From the NCBI GenBank assembly GCA_964247055.1, contig OZ176051.1, positions 12,462,001-12,526,000 of the forward strand: a stretch of DNA of 64,000 bases, in the 5' to 3' direction. The notes under the pieces were generated by a model that was not told the DNA's origin, made no database searches, and saw only the letters and a program-made list of their open reading frames with translations. The position numbers and the translations under genes were made by a program. Within the stretch, counting starts at the first letter, position 1. Each line of letters opens with the position of its first letter. This DNA is from Paragordius varius (lineage: Eukaryota; Animalia; Nematomorpha). This document shows, in pieces, positions 3,401 through 14,190 of the stretch.

Positions 3401-6400
3401 TCCTTCCAAAAATATTTTAACCGATTATTTCAATGTATTTTGACGAATACAATCTATCAGGCAGATATATTATGAGAGCAAATCACCGAAATCGTATCAT
3501 TGAACAATTTTATCTTACACAAATGGCAATCGAATTATAATAGTTCCTTTAGAGAGCAATAAAAAATATAGTGAATAGTGTAAGGTGTGTGGACATCAAA
3601 ATCCTACCTCCACCTCCACGTGGTGATGTCCGGAAACTTACACCATGTGTAAGGCCAACGGAGAAGGTCGATTTGAGAAAATCGTAGTCTTTTTAGACAT
3701 TCTCTAGCCTGGTGCAGCGAATAAGGTACCCTCACCTCTGAGTTAAAGGGGTTGGTTTATAAGGGCATATAATCCGTAAAACCTTGCCTCAAATTACAAA
3801 ACCATGAAGAAACGACTTACAAAAATGATTGATGATAATAAAACCTCTATTTCAAAACGAAATTTTAATTTTAATATAAATGATAATATATATTATGATA
3901 ATGCTAAATACAAATTACATAAATAATAGAAATAAAAATAATTCTAAAACAATAATAAATAAACCAGGTACAAATGAACAACCAAAAATAAAAATAAGAT
4001 ACAATAATCTAAATAAAAACTTCAAATCTATATCGGAACCATTTAAAATTGGCTCTTGGAATGTTGGAACAATGGTTAATAAGCAATGGCTGGTAATAGA
4101 TACGGTGCGAAACTTAGATTTAAACATATGCTGTTTACAAGAAACTCGATATAAAAATGCAGGTATAAAACACTTTGATGGTTATTCATTACTATACCAA
4201 GGTGGGAACAAAGGACAATCTGGCGTCGCTATAATGATGAAAGAAACACATCGACAAAACCTAATTACCGTGACCCGTCACAGTGATAGAATTATTCAAG
4301 CTAGAATGATATACAACAAATTGATCCTCAATATTATTTCCGTATATGCACCCCAAAAAGGCTTGCCCGATAAATGCAAGCTGGATTTTTGGGATCAGCT
4401 CTATCAAATATGTTCCAATATACCCGAAACAGACTGTATAATGATTGGAGGAGATTTAAATGCACATGTTGGAAGCAGCGAAGGTTTTTCTGGTATACAT
4501 GGAGGATACAACTTTGATAATCGGGACAAAGAAGGAGAAAATGTCTTAGAATTCTGTGCAGCTCAGCGACTACAGTTAGCAAACACTTTATTCACCAAAA
4601 GCAAAAATAAACTGATTACATACACTTCTGGCAATAATAATACAACAATAGACTACATCCTAACTAGCCAACACATTCGAAAATATCTGGTAAATACAAC
4701 CACTTATAACTCTGAAACACAGCATAAAGTTTTAACATCAATTTTCAAATTTAACTCAAGGCCTTTTAATCATAGAACCAAACCTAAACTTAATATACAC
4801 AAGTTTAAAAAACCTGATATAATGAATAATTTCAAAAAGTCGCTTAACTTAAACATTGATAATCTTGACGTTGAAGACTCCTGGCAAAGTCTAAGAAGCA
4901 ATACGATTGAAAATGTAGAAAAATGGTGTGGTAGAAGAAAGAGCAAAGCCCAAAAGAAATGGTGGTGGGACGATGCAATTAAGCCATTACTTAAAGAAAA
5001 GGCGCGTTTGTATAAAAAATGGAAGAAATCGAAAACAGAAAACGACAAAACTGAGTATTATAAATACAACAAAAAGGTTCAAAAGGAAATTAATAAATTA
5101 ATGAATGAAAAGGCTAAAGATACTGCCGATAAATTGGAAAAGGAAATCCAAAATAATAAAATTTTTAAACATATGAAACTTTACAATAATAACAAAAAAG
5201 ATATACCAACGATTAAATGTATAAAAGATAATAATAATAATTTACAAATACAACCAGAATTAATTAAATCGATATGGCAAAAATATATGGAGCAAAATCT
5301 AAACACCCCTTTAACACCCATAATAAATTCTGACCGAGATCCCTGTTGTGGCCCATTAAATACATTCACAATACAAGAAATTGAGATTGCTTTAGACCAA
5401 ATGAAATCAAACAAGGCTTCGGGCCCTAGTGAACTATGTTTTGATATCATTAAATTAATACCCAATATAACCATGCTTCTAACAAATTTATTTAACAAAA
5501 TAATAGTTGAAATGAAAATACCCAAAGATTGGGAAAAAAGCATTATATTTCCCATTTTCAAAAATAAAGGAGATATCCTAACCTGTTCCTCATACAGGCC
5601 CTTAAAACTTCTTGAACATGGGTTAAAAATTTTTGAAATGTGCCTCAAAAATCGTATCGTCCAGCTCATATCAATTAATCCAATGCAATTCGCCTTTTCA
5701 GCGGGCAAAAGCACAATCGATCCAATTTTCCTACTCAGACAATTACAAGATAAATACCGAGCAAAAGGTCGTAAACTATTCCACCTTTTTGTCGATTTAG
5801 AAAAGGCTTACGACTCAGTACCTAGAGCACTAATAATAGAATCACTGCGCTACAACAACGTAGATGAATATACCATTAAGTTAATTATGTTAATCTACAC
5901 TAACTCAATCAGTTGTGTTCTTACTCCTGTTGGGAATTCAGAGTATTTTAGTATAAATACTGGGCTGCATCAGGGATCTGTCCTTAGCCCACTTCTTTTT
6001 ATAGCTATAATTGATTACATAACAAAAGATATGAGAGAAGGTCTGCCTTATGAAATTCTTTATGCAGACGACCTCATAATCACTGCAGAAGATATTTCAA
6101 TACTCGAAAATAAATATCTTATATGGTCAAAACAATTACATAAATACGGTCTTAAAATCAATACAAACAAAACTAAAATTCTAATCACAGGAGATGAACA
6201 TAAAACTATAAAGTTCCCATGCCCAGTGTGCTCCACTGAGGTAAAACTAAACTCACTTTGTTGTACAAAATGCAGAAATTGGGTCCATAAAAAATGTTCC
6301 AACATAAAAGGAAAGTTAATTAATAATAATAATTTCATCTGCATACCATGTGCTTCATCAATACCACAGCCAATATCGAATCCACGTACTATAAACTTTA

Positions 6401-9146
6401 ATGGAGATAAACTAGAAGTGGTAACATCTTTCCCATATCTGGGCGATTATATAGCATCTGATGGTTCTTTGAGGGATGCCATTTCTCATAGAATCAGACA
6501 AGGATGGGCCAAATTCAATCAATTAAAATATATTTTAACTAATAAAAATATCAAATCGAATCACAAGATAAAGATTTACAAAATGGGAATAAGACCAGCT
6601 ATGACATACGCTACAGAAACCTGGGCCCTTACAGCAACAGACCTAAATAGACTTACTAGAGCTGAAAATCACATGCTCAAAATCTGCAACAATAATTTTG
6701 ATAATACCATAGAAGAAGATGAACCCATAGCTTTATTCATCCAGCGCAATCGATTGCGATATTACGGACATATTCAACGTATGAATTCCGATAACTGGGT
6801 CCAAAAAATACAACATTTAAATATACCCGGCCCAAACAGAAAAGGCCGCCCTAAGCTCACATGGTCCAAACAGCTGACCCAAGATCTATCACACTTCAAT
6901 ATTGAACACGAACAAGTCTTTGATAGGACATTGTTCAGGAAGTTGGTGCATGGAAACCCCAGATACCCTGGGACCTAAAATGAATGGATGGATGGATGGA
7001 TGTAAGGTGTGTAAAGATATACATGGATTAAAGGGTAACAAAAATTTGAGTAAGTATACATGTTAATTATTGCCAAATAGTAAATACAACAAAGGGCAGT
7101 ATTATTGGCTAATTTAATGATAAAAAAAGAAAAAAATAACTATAAGCCAATTATACTCCCCTTTGTTGTATTTACTATTTGGTAATAATTAATAACTTTC
7201 TAGCAATATACTTATTCATACTACAATTTGCGCAATGTGTTGTTTTTATATGTCAATTCAAATACTAAGTAAGGATATAGGCTTAGGCATTATTAATTAA
7301 GAATTATTTAAACAATATATTTGTAATAACCTTTTAGATATTTTAGTTTTTAGTATTATATAGCGTTAAAACCCTATTACTTTATAAAATTCATGCTTCC
7401 AACTATTAAAATTTATAAAGGCTTTTATAACCCCCCAAAAACACTATGTATACACAGTAAAAATATAAAAACATCCAGCTAACATTGGAATTATTTACAT
7501 ATAAATATTTTTTCCTAAACTTTAAAAATAAACTAAGAGGACAAATTTTATAAAATAATTGATTGTTTATATTTTTTATTGTTAAAAATATAAGGTTTAT
7601 AAATTTTAAACAAAAACCACCACCATTAATAAAAACATGCCTTTTACCGCATATAAAACCAATAAATTTTGTTATGTACCAAGAGGATATGTATCTTACA
7701 TATATAAAAAAATCAATATATTTTCTAGGAAATTAAAGTTTTAAACTAAAACCATTATTTTACAATATACATTCCCATAATAATATAGCAATCATAATTA
7801 TAATAATTAATTTTAAGGCAGAGATGGAAAAATATAAAATTATCATAAAAAATGAATAATTTTTATGATGAAACCTCTCTAGTTTTTGGACAAAACGGTT
7901 CCGCTAAGGGGAAATGCAAGACTCCAGTTTTATCATGACCTTGATAAAAGGTACTGATACGTTGGGTCGTCCTAATAATAAATGTTACAAGAAATTTGTA
8001 AAGACTAAGTTTTTCTCCCTTAGAAATCCAAATATATACAACTGTAAAGAAAAAATATGGCAAATTTTTTTGAAATGACATCTGTTATAACTTATTAGTT
8101 TAAATCATGGTAGTGCAATCAATTGTACATTTTTCAATTAAATTAAATGGTAAATGGGAAATAAGTTAAAAAAAGTATATGTGTTGTCTTTTGAAAAAAA
8201 TAATTGTCATAATGTTTTTACTATATTTTATGTCAATAATATTAATTTTTAATACTCGATCTAACCACCTTTGTAAATGCAATAGAAATGAAATAAAAGC
8301 TTATATAACCAAAGAGTAAAAAGGGTTATAAATTGTTGATTGAATTTAATTTATGAAAAACCATATTTTTTAATAAAAATCAGGTTATTTTATGAGCGAT
8401 TTCCTCACACACATATACATATATAAGCCGAATCCACAATCCTCATAAAGGTGTAAAAAAAGAATTATTATCACCGCAACTTAAATACTTTGAAAAAATT
8501 ATTTATATAAGTTGTTTATTCAATAGAATTTATCCCTTATACGATAACCTTAAAAACCAATTAAAATTTGGCATTGATAAAGAGATTTAGGCATTAATTA
8601 TTCATTAATTAATAATTTAAATATCTTTGTCGTATAAAAATCTCATGACTCTTATAATAAAATTTTAAAATCAAGTTGAACAAAATTGAATAATTAGTAA
8701 ACATATAACCTATCAATAAATTGGTCAATAAAAACGAGTTGTCCTGGTTTTATATTATCTTGCAAAGAACCACAAGCAGAAGAAACAATCACATGAGTAC
8801 ATCCTTGCATACGGAGAGCAAAAATATTGGCTCGATAATTTATGTATGATGGTGGGATGTTATGTTCCTTCCCATGCCTGTTTTACATAATATATAGTAA
8901 ATTTGTTTTTAAAAAAAAGGCCTACTACAAAAAGAATAATGGCAATTAAAAAACCTGGGCAGCAATACGCAATCCACTCCACAGATTTTCCCAACCGTTA
9001 AATCATCCGAAGGTTTGCCAAAAGGCGTATCGACGGAAATAACTTTTTTATCTTGGATCAAAGTTGCATCATCCAACCCAGAGCCACATATAAGACCAAT
9101 CTTTTAATAAAAACTGAAAAGAAACTTTTATTGGTATTTGGGTCAT
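459..9146 (-). CDS. MTAP: S-methyl-5'-thioadenosine phosphorylase, exons 1-5; continues beyond the left edge
   Basis: Exons 9126-9146 (MTQIPIK), 8955-9100 ([11 protein letters not shown]...DTPFGKPSD...DCVLLPR), 8710-8877 (HG...NYRANIFAL...SACGSL...DQFIDR), 7875-7971 (TTQR...[11 protein letters not shown]), 459-611 ([12 protein letters not shown]...[13 protein letters not shown]). All introns are GT-AG with consistent phases, and the motifs match MTAP. Confidence 0.95.
2905..3560. mobile_element. Degenerate inverted-repeat (MITE/foldback-like) element
   Basis: ataattcgattgccattt (~2923-2940) is the reverse complement of aaatggcaatcgaattat (~3521-3538). 3108-3160 is approximately the reverse complement of 3450-3503. 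The left arm is interrupted by ~150 bp flanked by tttatgta direct repeats. Confidence 0.5.
3591..3663 (+). ncRNA. HDV-like self-cleaving ribozyme at the 5' end of the RTE element
   Basis: P1 GGACATC (3591-3597)/GATGTCC (3625-3631); P2 CTCC (3608-3611)/GGAG (3660-3663); P3 ACC/GGT with L3 TCCACGT; P1.1 GG (3632-3633); P4 CTTACAC/GTGTAAG; J4/2 GCCAAC with candidate catalytic C3655. Same layout as the antigenomic HDV ribozyme. Confidence 0.88.
3804..3926 (+). CDS. 40-aa upstream ORF overlapping the start of the RTE ORF in another frame
   Basis: accATG at 3804 reads [40 protein letters not shown], ending at 3926, and overlaps the main ORF that starts at 3880. Confidence 0.45.
   Translation: MKKRLTKMIDDNKTSISKRNFNFNINDNIYYDNAKYKLHK
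3880..6978 (+). CDS. RTE-type polyprotein, 1032 aa: APE endonuclease, reverse transcriptase and an inserted PHD-type zinc finger
   Basis: APE motifs IGSWNV, CCLQET, IISVYAP, GGDLNAH, IDYIL, TQH. RT motifs [26 protein letters not shown]4HC3 motif at 6220-6351. No stops or frameshifts. Confidence 0.97.
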   Translation: MIIYIMIMLNTNYINNRNKNNSKTIINKPGTNEQPKIKIRYNNLNKNFKSISEPFKIGSWNVGTMVNKQWLVIDTVRNLDLNICCLQETRYKNAGIKHFDGYSLLYQGGNKGQSGVAIMMKETHRQNLITVTRHSDRIIQARMIYNKLILNIISVYAPQKGLPDKCKLDFWDQLYQICSNIPETDCIMIGGDLNAHVGSSEGFSGIHGGYNFDNRDKEGENVLEFCAAQRLQLANTLFTKSKNKLITYTSGNNNTTIDYILTSQHIRKYLVNTTTYNSETQHKVLTSIFKFNSRPFNHRTKPKLNIHKFKKPDIMNNFKKSLNLNIDNLDVEDSWQSLRSNTIENVEKWCGRRKSKAQKKWWWDDAIKPLLKEKARLYKKWKKSKTENDKTEYYKYNKKVQKEINKLMNEKAKDTADKLEKEIQNNKIFKHMKLYNNNKKDIPTIKCIKDNNNNLQIQPELIKSIWQKYMEQNLNTPLTPIINSDRDPCCGPLNTFTIQEIEIALDQMKSNKASGPSELCFDIIKLIPNITMLLTNLFNKIIVEMKIPKDWEKSIIFPIFKNKGDILTCSSYRPLKLLEHGLKIFEMCLKNRIVQLISINPMQFAFSAGKSTIDPIFLLRQLQDKYRAKGRKLFHLFVDLEKAYDSVPRALIIESLRYNNVDEYTIKLIMLIYTNSISCVLTPVGNSEYFSINTGLHQGSVLSPLLFIAIIDYITKDMREGLPYEILYADDLIITAEDISILENKYLIWSKQLHKYGLKINTNKTKILITGDEHKTIKFPCPVCSTEVKLNSLCCTKCRNWVHKKCSNIKGKLINNNNFICIPCASSIPQPISNPRTINFNGDKLEVVTSFPYLGDYIASDGSLRDAISHRIRQGWAKFNQLKYILTNKNIKSNHKIKIYKMGIRPAMTYATETWALTATDLNRLTRAENHMLKICNNNFDNTIEEDEPIALFIQRNRLRYYGHIQRMNSDNWVQKIQHLNIPGPNRKGRPKLTWSKQLTQDLSHFNIEHEQVFDRTLFRKLVHGNPRYPGT

Positions 9147-13484: not shown

Positions 13485-14190
13485 ATTGCTCTGAAGAATC
13501 CATCGCAAAAGACTATGAATTGTTAACTCTTATGCAATTATATACAGGCAAAAAATATATGAATACATCATTGTGGGTTTAAAAACAAAATGAACTGTAT
13601 ATCTTACCTTTCACTCTAACATCAATATTTGGATCACATAACACGCTTAAAATTTTCTTCCAATTTATCCAACTGCTCTTTATTTTTAAATTGATATCAT
13701 CGGTCAACGATCCAAATGAACTTAACTTAGCCCCCAAATATTTGCAACTTTCTTTACCCTTCAGAACTAAACTATCATCAACTTCCATTTCATGTTGTAA
13801 ACCCCCAAAAGTAATAAGTTCGGTTTTTTATTTACTTTCAGACCGTATTGATTCAGTATAATGACCCATCTGTTTACCGTTCGCTTTAACTCAGCCAATG
13901 AATCAGACAAGATGATTATGTCATCTGCATACATTAAGGACCATGGCTATCTCGTCCATACAAATTATAAACAATAAGGGGCTTAGTGATGACCTTGGTA
14001 GACTCCATGCTTTATTGAAAAGGGTTCTGATATACCTTGTGGAGTTTTAATCCTGGAGATGTGAGATTCGTACATTATTTGTAACAACTTGATATAACTT
14101 TCTACCTTTTTACCAAATAGTTTATCTAGAAATCCTGTCAAAAGCCTTTTCTATCTCAATTAATATACGCAAATCCCCATTTAATGCTTT
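13485..14190 (-). pseudogene. Decayed fragment of an RTE-like reverse transcriptase from a second lineage
   Basis: Minus-strand reading gives IEKAFDRISR, HGVYQG/SLSPLLFIICMDE, PWSLMYADDIIIL, KYLG and WINWKKILSVLCD...KGKIY, with stops and frameshifts. Confidence 0.85.

Follow-up and report, generated by a model that had tools for sequence, protein, structure and literature searches.

We analysed a 64,000-nucleotide window of the Paragordius varius genome (OZ176051.1, 12,462,001-12,526,000, forward strand; coordinates below are positions in this window). The window contains a complete RTE-like retrotransposon without long terminal repeats (non-LTR), a long interspersed nuclear element (LINE), whose single open reading frame (ORF) encodes an apurinic/apyrimidinic endonuclease (APE) and a reverse transcriptase (RT). 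Sequence comparison and structure prediction indicate that a PHD-type zinc finger is embedded in the RT, between its motifs 6 and 7. The element, its ORF and the RT features around the finger are as follows.

3591-7003, plus strand: complete RTE-like non-LTR retrotransposon (LINE), 3413 bp, one APE and RT ORF (blastn against genomic copies)
3880-6978, plus strand: ORF of 1032 amino acids, encoding an APE endonuclease, an RT that contains the PHD finger, a thumb and a C-terminal region (Pfam, AlphaFold2)
6061-6072, plus strand: RT motif 5, YADD catalytic residues 728-731 (A249, D250 and D251 invariant in alignment A2)
6148-6177, plus strand: RT motif 6, residues 757-766, the final RT block ahead of the insert (N761, K764 and K766 invariant in A2)
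6202-6387, plus strand: whole insert (N-linker, PHD finger, C-linker), approximately residues 775-836, at the RT '6a' insertion site
6211-6351, plus strand: PHD finger core, K778-C824, with ligands C781, C784, C795, C798, H803, C806, C821 and C824
6436-6444, plus strand: RT motif 7, YLG, residues 853-855 (Y373, L374 and G375 invariant in A2)

Layout of the ORF

In the ORF, Pfam recognised Exo_endo_phos at residues 58-266, RVT_1 at 563-778 and PHD at 781-824. Beyond the PHD finger, the scan of the ORF revealed no further Cys-rich motif and no zinc or DNA-binding domain, and neither RNase H nor a C-terminal CCHC was found in the 1032 amino acids. The insert appears as a single gap of about 60 amino acids when the protein is aligned by MAFFT with fingerless relatives; it follows motif 6 (NxxKTK) and precedes the strand leading to motif 7 (YLG). 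Hidden Markov model alignments to R2 and to LINE-1 ORF2p stop at or soon after motif 6. The AlphaFold2 model of residues 481-1032 (552 amino acids) had a predicted local distance difference test score (pLDDT) of 89.4 and, apart from the finger and linkers, superposed on R2 (Z 24.9, 462 residues) and on LINE-1 ORF2p (Z about 20-21). The finger itself was modelled with a pLDDT of 84-92 and the two linkers with lower values (68 and 77).

Identity of the finger

Bases 6211-6351, translated in the frame of the ORF, read KFP-CPVC-x10-CTKC-x4-HKKC-x14-CIPC. The ligand pattern C-x2-C-x10-C-x2-C-x4-H-x2-C-x14-C-x2-C covers residues 781-824 (bases 6220-6351), with the first Cys codon at 6220-6222 and the last at 6349-6351; an extra cysteine, Cys794, is not a ligand. 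An earlier note on this DNA had placed a C4HC3 PHD-type finger inside the RT polypeptide at exactly these coordinates, between the YADD and YLG blocks. The position proved exact and in frame with ORF 3880-6978, and Pfam, the profile search described below and AlphaFold2 with Foldseek all agree with the assignment. The Cys/His pattern given there was also right, except that two spacers counted as x9 and x15 are in fact x10 and x14.

When a 100-amino-acid piece was excised and compared with the Pfam PHD family (PF00628), it scored 25.1 bits (E 1.8e-5), just above the cut-off of 24 bits, whereas the whole protein scored 20.7 bits, under the cut-off; taken as a single sequence, the finger is a borderline match. 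A phmmer search of the PDB returned mostly PHD fingers, and all matches better than E 0.5 were PHD fingers. A profile built from 48 family members gave a much clearer result: its best match in the PDB was the Pygopus PHD finger (E 2.8e-9), followed by those of PHF23, BPTF, ALFIN-like, PHF13, Set3, PHF2, CFP1 and TAF3. We take the PHD fingers of these eight followers to be readers of histone H3 methylated at lysine 4 (H3K4me). A protein search with residues 745-880 alone found nothing at E 1e-6, which is uninformative because few words are shared and the E-values are scaled to a very large database.

Structure prediction, one of the checks suggested in the earlier note, likewise gave a PHD fold. 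An 81-amino-acid piece modelled by AlphaFold2 with the family alignment had a core pLDDT of 84-94 and consisted of two short strands and short helices. In a Foldseek search against the PDB all of the top 50 matches were PHD fingers, with a probability of 0.8-1.0, a root-mean-square deviation mostly of 2-3 Å and 46-57 aligned columns; the template modelling score by target was mostly 0.5-0.7 where the target chain was a lone finger. Zinc itself is absent from the model, and the cross-brace two-zinc fold was judged from the protein chain. The core aromatic residue two before the seventh ligand is also present: F or Y is the first residue in all of the ten commonest pairs at this place, and the window copy has FI.

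The family resembles the Pygopus, BPTF and TAF3 PHD fingers, which read H3K4me2/3, in its C4HC3 spacing class and in its fold. Its consensus, KYPCGVC..GVG.NSI.C..C..WVHKRCSG, is nearly that of Pygopus, YPCG.C..EVNDDQDAILCEASCQKWFHR.CTG, both aromatic positions included, and the motif YPCGxC...(D/N)(A/S)I.C..C.KW.H..C(S/T)G is nearly common to both. Unlike those fingers, it sits in a polymerase, is strongly basic, and has its acidic pocket residues replaced. Judged from sequence and model together, bases 6220-6351 encode a genuine C4HC3 two-zinc PHD finger. A chance arrangement of cysteines and histidines was rejected on the Pfam score, the E-value of the family profile (2.8e-9) and the conservation of the ligands in 129 of 130 relatives.

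Conservation and distribution

To describe the occurrence of the finger, we surveyed 215 fetched relatives. The spacing between YADD and YLG, 125 amino acids in the window ORF (728 to 853), was long in 130 of them (123-170, median 130), and 129 of these 130 kept all eight metal ligands; copies of the element at 97-100% identity in the same genome all keep the finger. In the 80 relatives with short spacing (65-69) the ligands were found in none. A precomputed PF00628 match was available for 90 of the 215 proteins, roughly 70% of those with the finger. Among 128 finger-bearing proteins, the proline before Cys1 was present in all, the tryptophan two before the His in 127, and an aromatic residue or His (Y/W/F/H) two before Cys1 in 106; the Asn-Ser pair before the Cys3 strand was nearly invariant and the spacing of the ligands almost fixed. 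Since these residues are invariant in proteins that share only 33-54% overall identity, the finger has been under strong purifying selection across several phyla.

Such conservation bears on the idea that the finger is a structural brace of the palm/thumb junction, or a neutral passenger kept by descent, with no role in targeting. Fingerless sister elements in the same genome are intact and abundant, and one member of the clade (P0209) is without the finger, as this idea would allow. A brace or passenger would hardly be expected, however, to keep its ligands, Trp, Pro and Asn-Ser pair (nearly) invariant at such low overall identity, and a mutated finger was met in a single protein, P0179, of the 130; we regard this explanation as very improbable.

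The two exceptions can be described further. P0179, the only relative with long spacing and a mutated finger, has two ligands changed. P0209 is seemingly an RT of the finger clade with the finger deleted, KTKVM..RCS remaining. Judging by their sequences, both look like rare secondary losses or decayed copies.

The finger is found well beyond the window. At least five widely differing families of the same genome carry it, and it is retained in every family with only 49-56% identity to the window copy. Named carriers are Acanthocheilonema viteae (Nematoda), Gordionus sp. (Nematomorpha) and Hydractinia symbiolongicarpus (Cnidaria), and ESM Atlas clusters with RVT_1 and PHD are labelled Mollusca and Nematoda, most commonly Mollusca. 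The suspicion of the earlier note that other invertebrate elements may have similar inserts was thus well founded, with nematode, horsehair worm and hydrozoan carriers and mollusc clusters.

A survey mapped on an RT tree had been suggested as well. We calculated an unrooted maximum-likelihood tree of 81 RT sequences from which the finger columns had been removed. One branch, with a Shimodaira-Hasegawa-like approximate likelihood ratio test (SH-aLRT) value of 100, separated all 62 finger-bearing rows from all 19 fingerless rows, the latter being catfish gene models, metagenome elements and a second RTE family of the Paragordius varius genome with ORFs of 977 amino acids. On this tree, one evolutionary change explains the distribution of the finger. 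Because the solved LINE-1 and R2 proteins gave no PHD match, a single gain is the simpler reading, though not a proven one. Midpoint rooting separates off an AT-rich nematode group; compositional bias makes this root unreliable. Among the relatives compared, the finger is a defining, strongly conserved trait of a large invertebrate clade of RTE-like elements.

A fingerless RTE family in the same genome

The second family is represented in the window by the following fragment.

13579-14141, minus strand: degenerate copy, with frameshifts, from a second RTE family that lacks the finger (L037)

In this fragment and its intact relatives, YADD and YLG are 63-69 amino acids apart. The earlier note had contrasted a spacing of about 127 in the element with about 60 in the fragment; the contrast of long and short stands, and the figures become 125 and 63-69. 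Intact copies of the fingerless family have ORFs of 977 amino acids; the genome shows at least 150 matches to this family, which groups with catfish elements on the RT tree. As an intact family of this kind coexists with the finger-bearing ones, the finger is an alternative strategy and not a requirement.

Among the fingerless proteins, P0002-P0020 and similar entries are gene models of Hemibagrus guttatus, 1000-1800 amino acids long, in which at least two fingerless RTE-like RT copies form a chain; some are fused to host domains. These chain models are probably gene-model artefacts over repeats.

The element and its copies

The ends of the element are defined by the following features.

3581-3590, plus strand: target-site duplication, left copy, TAAGGTGTGT, identical to the 10 bases at 7004-7013
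3591-3667, plus strand: hepatitis delta virus (HDV)-like self-cleaving ribozyme, beginning with the first base of the element (Rfam drz-agam-1, RF01787)
6979-7003, plus strand: 3' untranslated region (UTR) of 25 bp, built from tetramer repeats of the (ATGG)n type and bounded by the stop codon and the target-site duplication
7004-7013, plus strand: target-site duplication, right copy, TAAGGTGTGT, matching 3581-3590

The ribozyme matched drz-agam-1 with 44.7 bits (gathering score 37, E 7e-7) over the first 77 bases of the element. All full-length copies start at its first base, with GGACATC, which makes self-cleavage the probable origin of the 5' end.

Using blastn, we found 12 other genomic copies matching 3591-7003 at 97.7-99.3% identity. 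The set comprises eight complete or almost complete copies, four with a truncated 5' end and one with an inverted 5' end. Every copy is flanked by a target-site duplication of its own, 10-13 bp long, and the full-length ones share the same element ends. At the protein level, at least 13 copies of the element with 97-100% identity are present in the genome (110 Mb, 44 contigs). By its anatomy, the element is a recently active RTE-type LINE. In the copy L040 (G000:C4:1564635-1571047), the first ~250 bases are joined in inverted orientation to element position 1628, a 5' inversion resembling the product of twin priming in LINE-1.

The start of the window ORF differs from that of other copies, whose open frames reach 1069 amino acids against 1032 here. 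Eleven bases after 3904 are absent from the window copy and present in contigs of three public runs (window 3804-3920). Because these bases are missing, the upstream ATG at 3804 does not share the frame of the main ORF, whose start is at 3880. The public runs X1, X5, X6 and X7, labelled with at least four coded organisms and coming from different studies, contain contigs that match the element at about 99% identity; related species, contamination or horizontal transfer are possible sources.

A long hairpin repeat at 7071-7187 adjoins the element, and contig depth exceeds 1000 at 7083-7200. The hairpin gave a weak Rfam match to MIR161 (41.5 bits). This score is far under the gathering score of 90, and the hairpin is probably a high-copy repeat resembling a miniature inverted-repeat transposable element and not a microRNA.

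A very short 3' UTR of tandem short repeats is a hallmark of the RTE clade (PMC1291365). The element agrees with that clade in its length (about 3.3-3.4 kb), its single ORF of about 1000-1070 amino acids with N-terminal APE and RT, its lack of a C-terminal CCHC or RNase H and its very short tetramer-repeat 3' UTR (PMC1291365). The nearest fingerless relatives have the same layout and the same C-terminal RLRW.GH..R and GRP...W blocks. The element is thus RTE-like by layout and 3' UTR, as the earlier note had recognised, while the RT tree holds only unnamed or gene-model relatives. What sets it apart from the published descriptions of RTE elements that we found is the PHD-finger insert of about 60 amino acids between RT motifs 6 and 7.

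Possible function of the finger

LINE RTs have an insertion named 6a (PMC5678591), and in R2 motif 6a contacts or wedges into the upstream target DNA (PMC11204384, PMC11601368). The finger holds the same place in the primary structure of the RT, after motif 6 and before motif 7, and by this motif order it would replace or enlarge a loop facing the target DNA. Motif 6a of R2 is a short loop without zinc ligands, whereas the element has a complete two-zinc domain on linkers.

We tentatively favour, at a little short of an even chance, the view that the finger is a chromatin-docking module using an H3-tail pocket together with a basic surface on DNA. The finger would be attached by two flexible linkers to the side of the RT that in R2 touches the upstream target DNA, and would act as a target-docking module during target-primed reverse transcription. 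The ribonucleoprotein would be held on nucleosomal targets by a pocket of the Pygopus/BPTF type for the H3 tail, formed by the aromatic residue two positions ahead of Cys1 and the Trp two positions ahead of the His, while the strongly basic surface lay on DNA. In the window copy the candidate cage residues are F779 and W801, the cage positions being those we assume from the Pygopus and BPTF structures; at these places the family has the aromatic pair of an H3K4me reader, with the conservation given above. Such a finger would let an ORF otherwise devoid of zinc and DNA-binding domains engage chromatin and might bias the choice of insertion sites.

Several observations weigh against this view. 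The junctions of the 13 young copies show no shared target sequence and no target-sequence preference. The finger is very basic, with a mean net charge of +7.8 (range +3 to +13) over about 47 residues, and Gly, Asn, Ser or Lys stand where Pygopus has Asp or Glu, so that binding of the basic H3 tail would be disfavoured. The first aromatic residue, two before Cys1, is replaced by Asp in 17 of the 128 finger-bearing proteins. Since this genome also supports a thriving RTE family without the finger, transposition of the RTE type does not require the finger. The correspondence of the insert site with R2 motif 6a is itself inferred from motif order and nomenclature, without a superposition of coordinates. 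A complex prediction of the finger with the unmodified H3 tail (residues 2-40) of its own genome gave a score of 0.00, which counts neither for nor against this view.

The charge of the finger could equally indicate a purely nucleic-acid-binding zinc module that reads no histone. It would then be a larger 6a loop gripping either the target DNA, like motif 6a of R2, or the template RNA and primer, as other LINEs do with their C-terminal CCHC knuckles. In favour of this, the finger lacks the acidic residues with which Pygopus binds H3, the R2 motif touches DNA, the ORF has no other domain for this task, and extended PHD and PZP modules can bind DNA. Nevertheless, a simple basic loop would need neither a two-zinc fold nor a conserved half-cage, and the Trp in 127 of 128 proteins, the aromatic residue or His in 106 of 128 and the best profile matches, all of them to methyl-lysine readers, speak for something more; we consider a mere nucleic-acid binder possible but rather unlikely. 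The interpretation given in the earlier note is supported in part: its finger inside the RT is borne out, and the reader aromatics and the closest profiles agree with a chromatin reader that might steer insertion, while the basic charge fits DNA or RNA equally well and no target consensus was found.

The closest solved relatives, the Pygopus PHD fingers, have a second protein-binding face and also bind BCL9. By analogy, the finger on its flexible linkers might be a protein-protein adaptor, which either recruits a host factor (nuclear import, replication-fork or repair proteins) or oligomerises the element protein. The evidence points to no partner, and the conserved positions fall on the ligands and on the side of the peptide groove, not on an obvious second face, which makes an adaptor quite improbable.

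The docking module that we prefer can also be put in a stronger form, in which a histone-mark reader inside the RT directs target-primed reverse transcription to nucleosomes of a particular H3 state throughout the clade. This stronger form is doubtful. Should it hold, non-LTR elements would have their own equivalent of the chromodomain found in chromoviral integrases, and an RT domain would for the first time be seen to read chromatin.

Relation to known PHD-bearing elements

The PHD finger is a recurrent accessory domain of transposable elements, known from ORF1 of CR1/L2-type LINEs and from five Penelope-like families of Chlamys, where it is inserted between RT2a and RT3 and provides a precedent for a PHD finger inside an RT (PMC8557442; PMC4120745). 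The finger described here differs in belonging to another class of elements, in being inserted at 6a and not at 2a/3, and in being a clade-wide trait across animal phyla as opposed to five algal families.

Among RTE elements, the octopus RTE-2_OV has a single ORF of 1109 amino acids with endonuclease and RT, a microsatellite at its end, and a zinc finger called C2H2, which is reported without a stated position and as 'relatively rare in RTE elements' (PMC9115989). This zinc finger may be the same domain as the PHD finger of our element. RTE-1 of C. elegans is 1066 amino acids long (PMC1291365), enough that it could hold such a finger.

In our literature search no paper turned up that describes a PHD finger within the RT of an RTE element or at its 6a site, although precomputed Pfam annotations already mark the finger on many database proteins. 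An RT-embedded, clade-defining finger at 6a is apparently undescribed and is not a one-off oddity. The novelty that the earlier note had wished to see checked is less than that of a unique insert, for the finger is the hallmark of a large and widespread clade.

Significance

The finger is a small, expressible domain suited to direct binding tests, and targeting modules embedded in an RT are relevant to the engineering of gene insertion tools based on retrotransposons. Little is understood of how LINEs that lack sequence-specific domains select their insertion sites. In this element a domain recognisable as a reader or binder would be placed at the RT loop that in R2 makes contact with the target DNA, and the presence of finger-bearing families and an active fingerless sister family in one host, Paragordius varius, offers a natural comparison.

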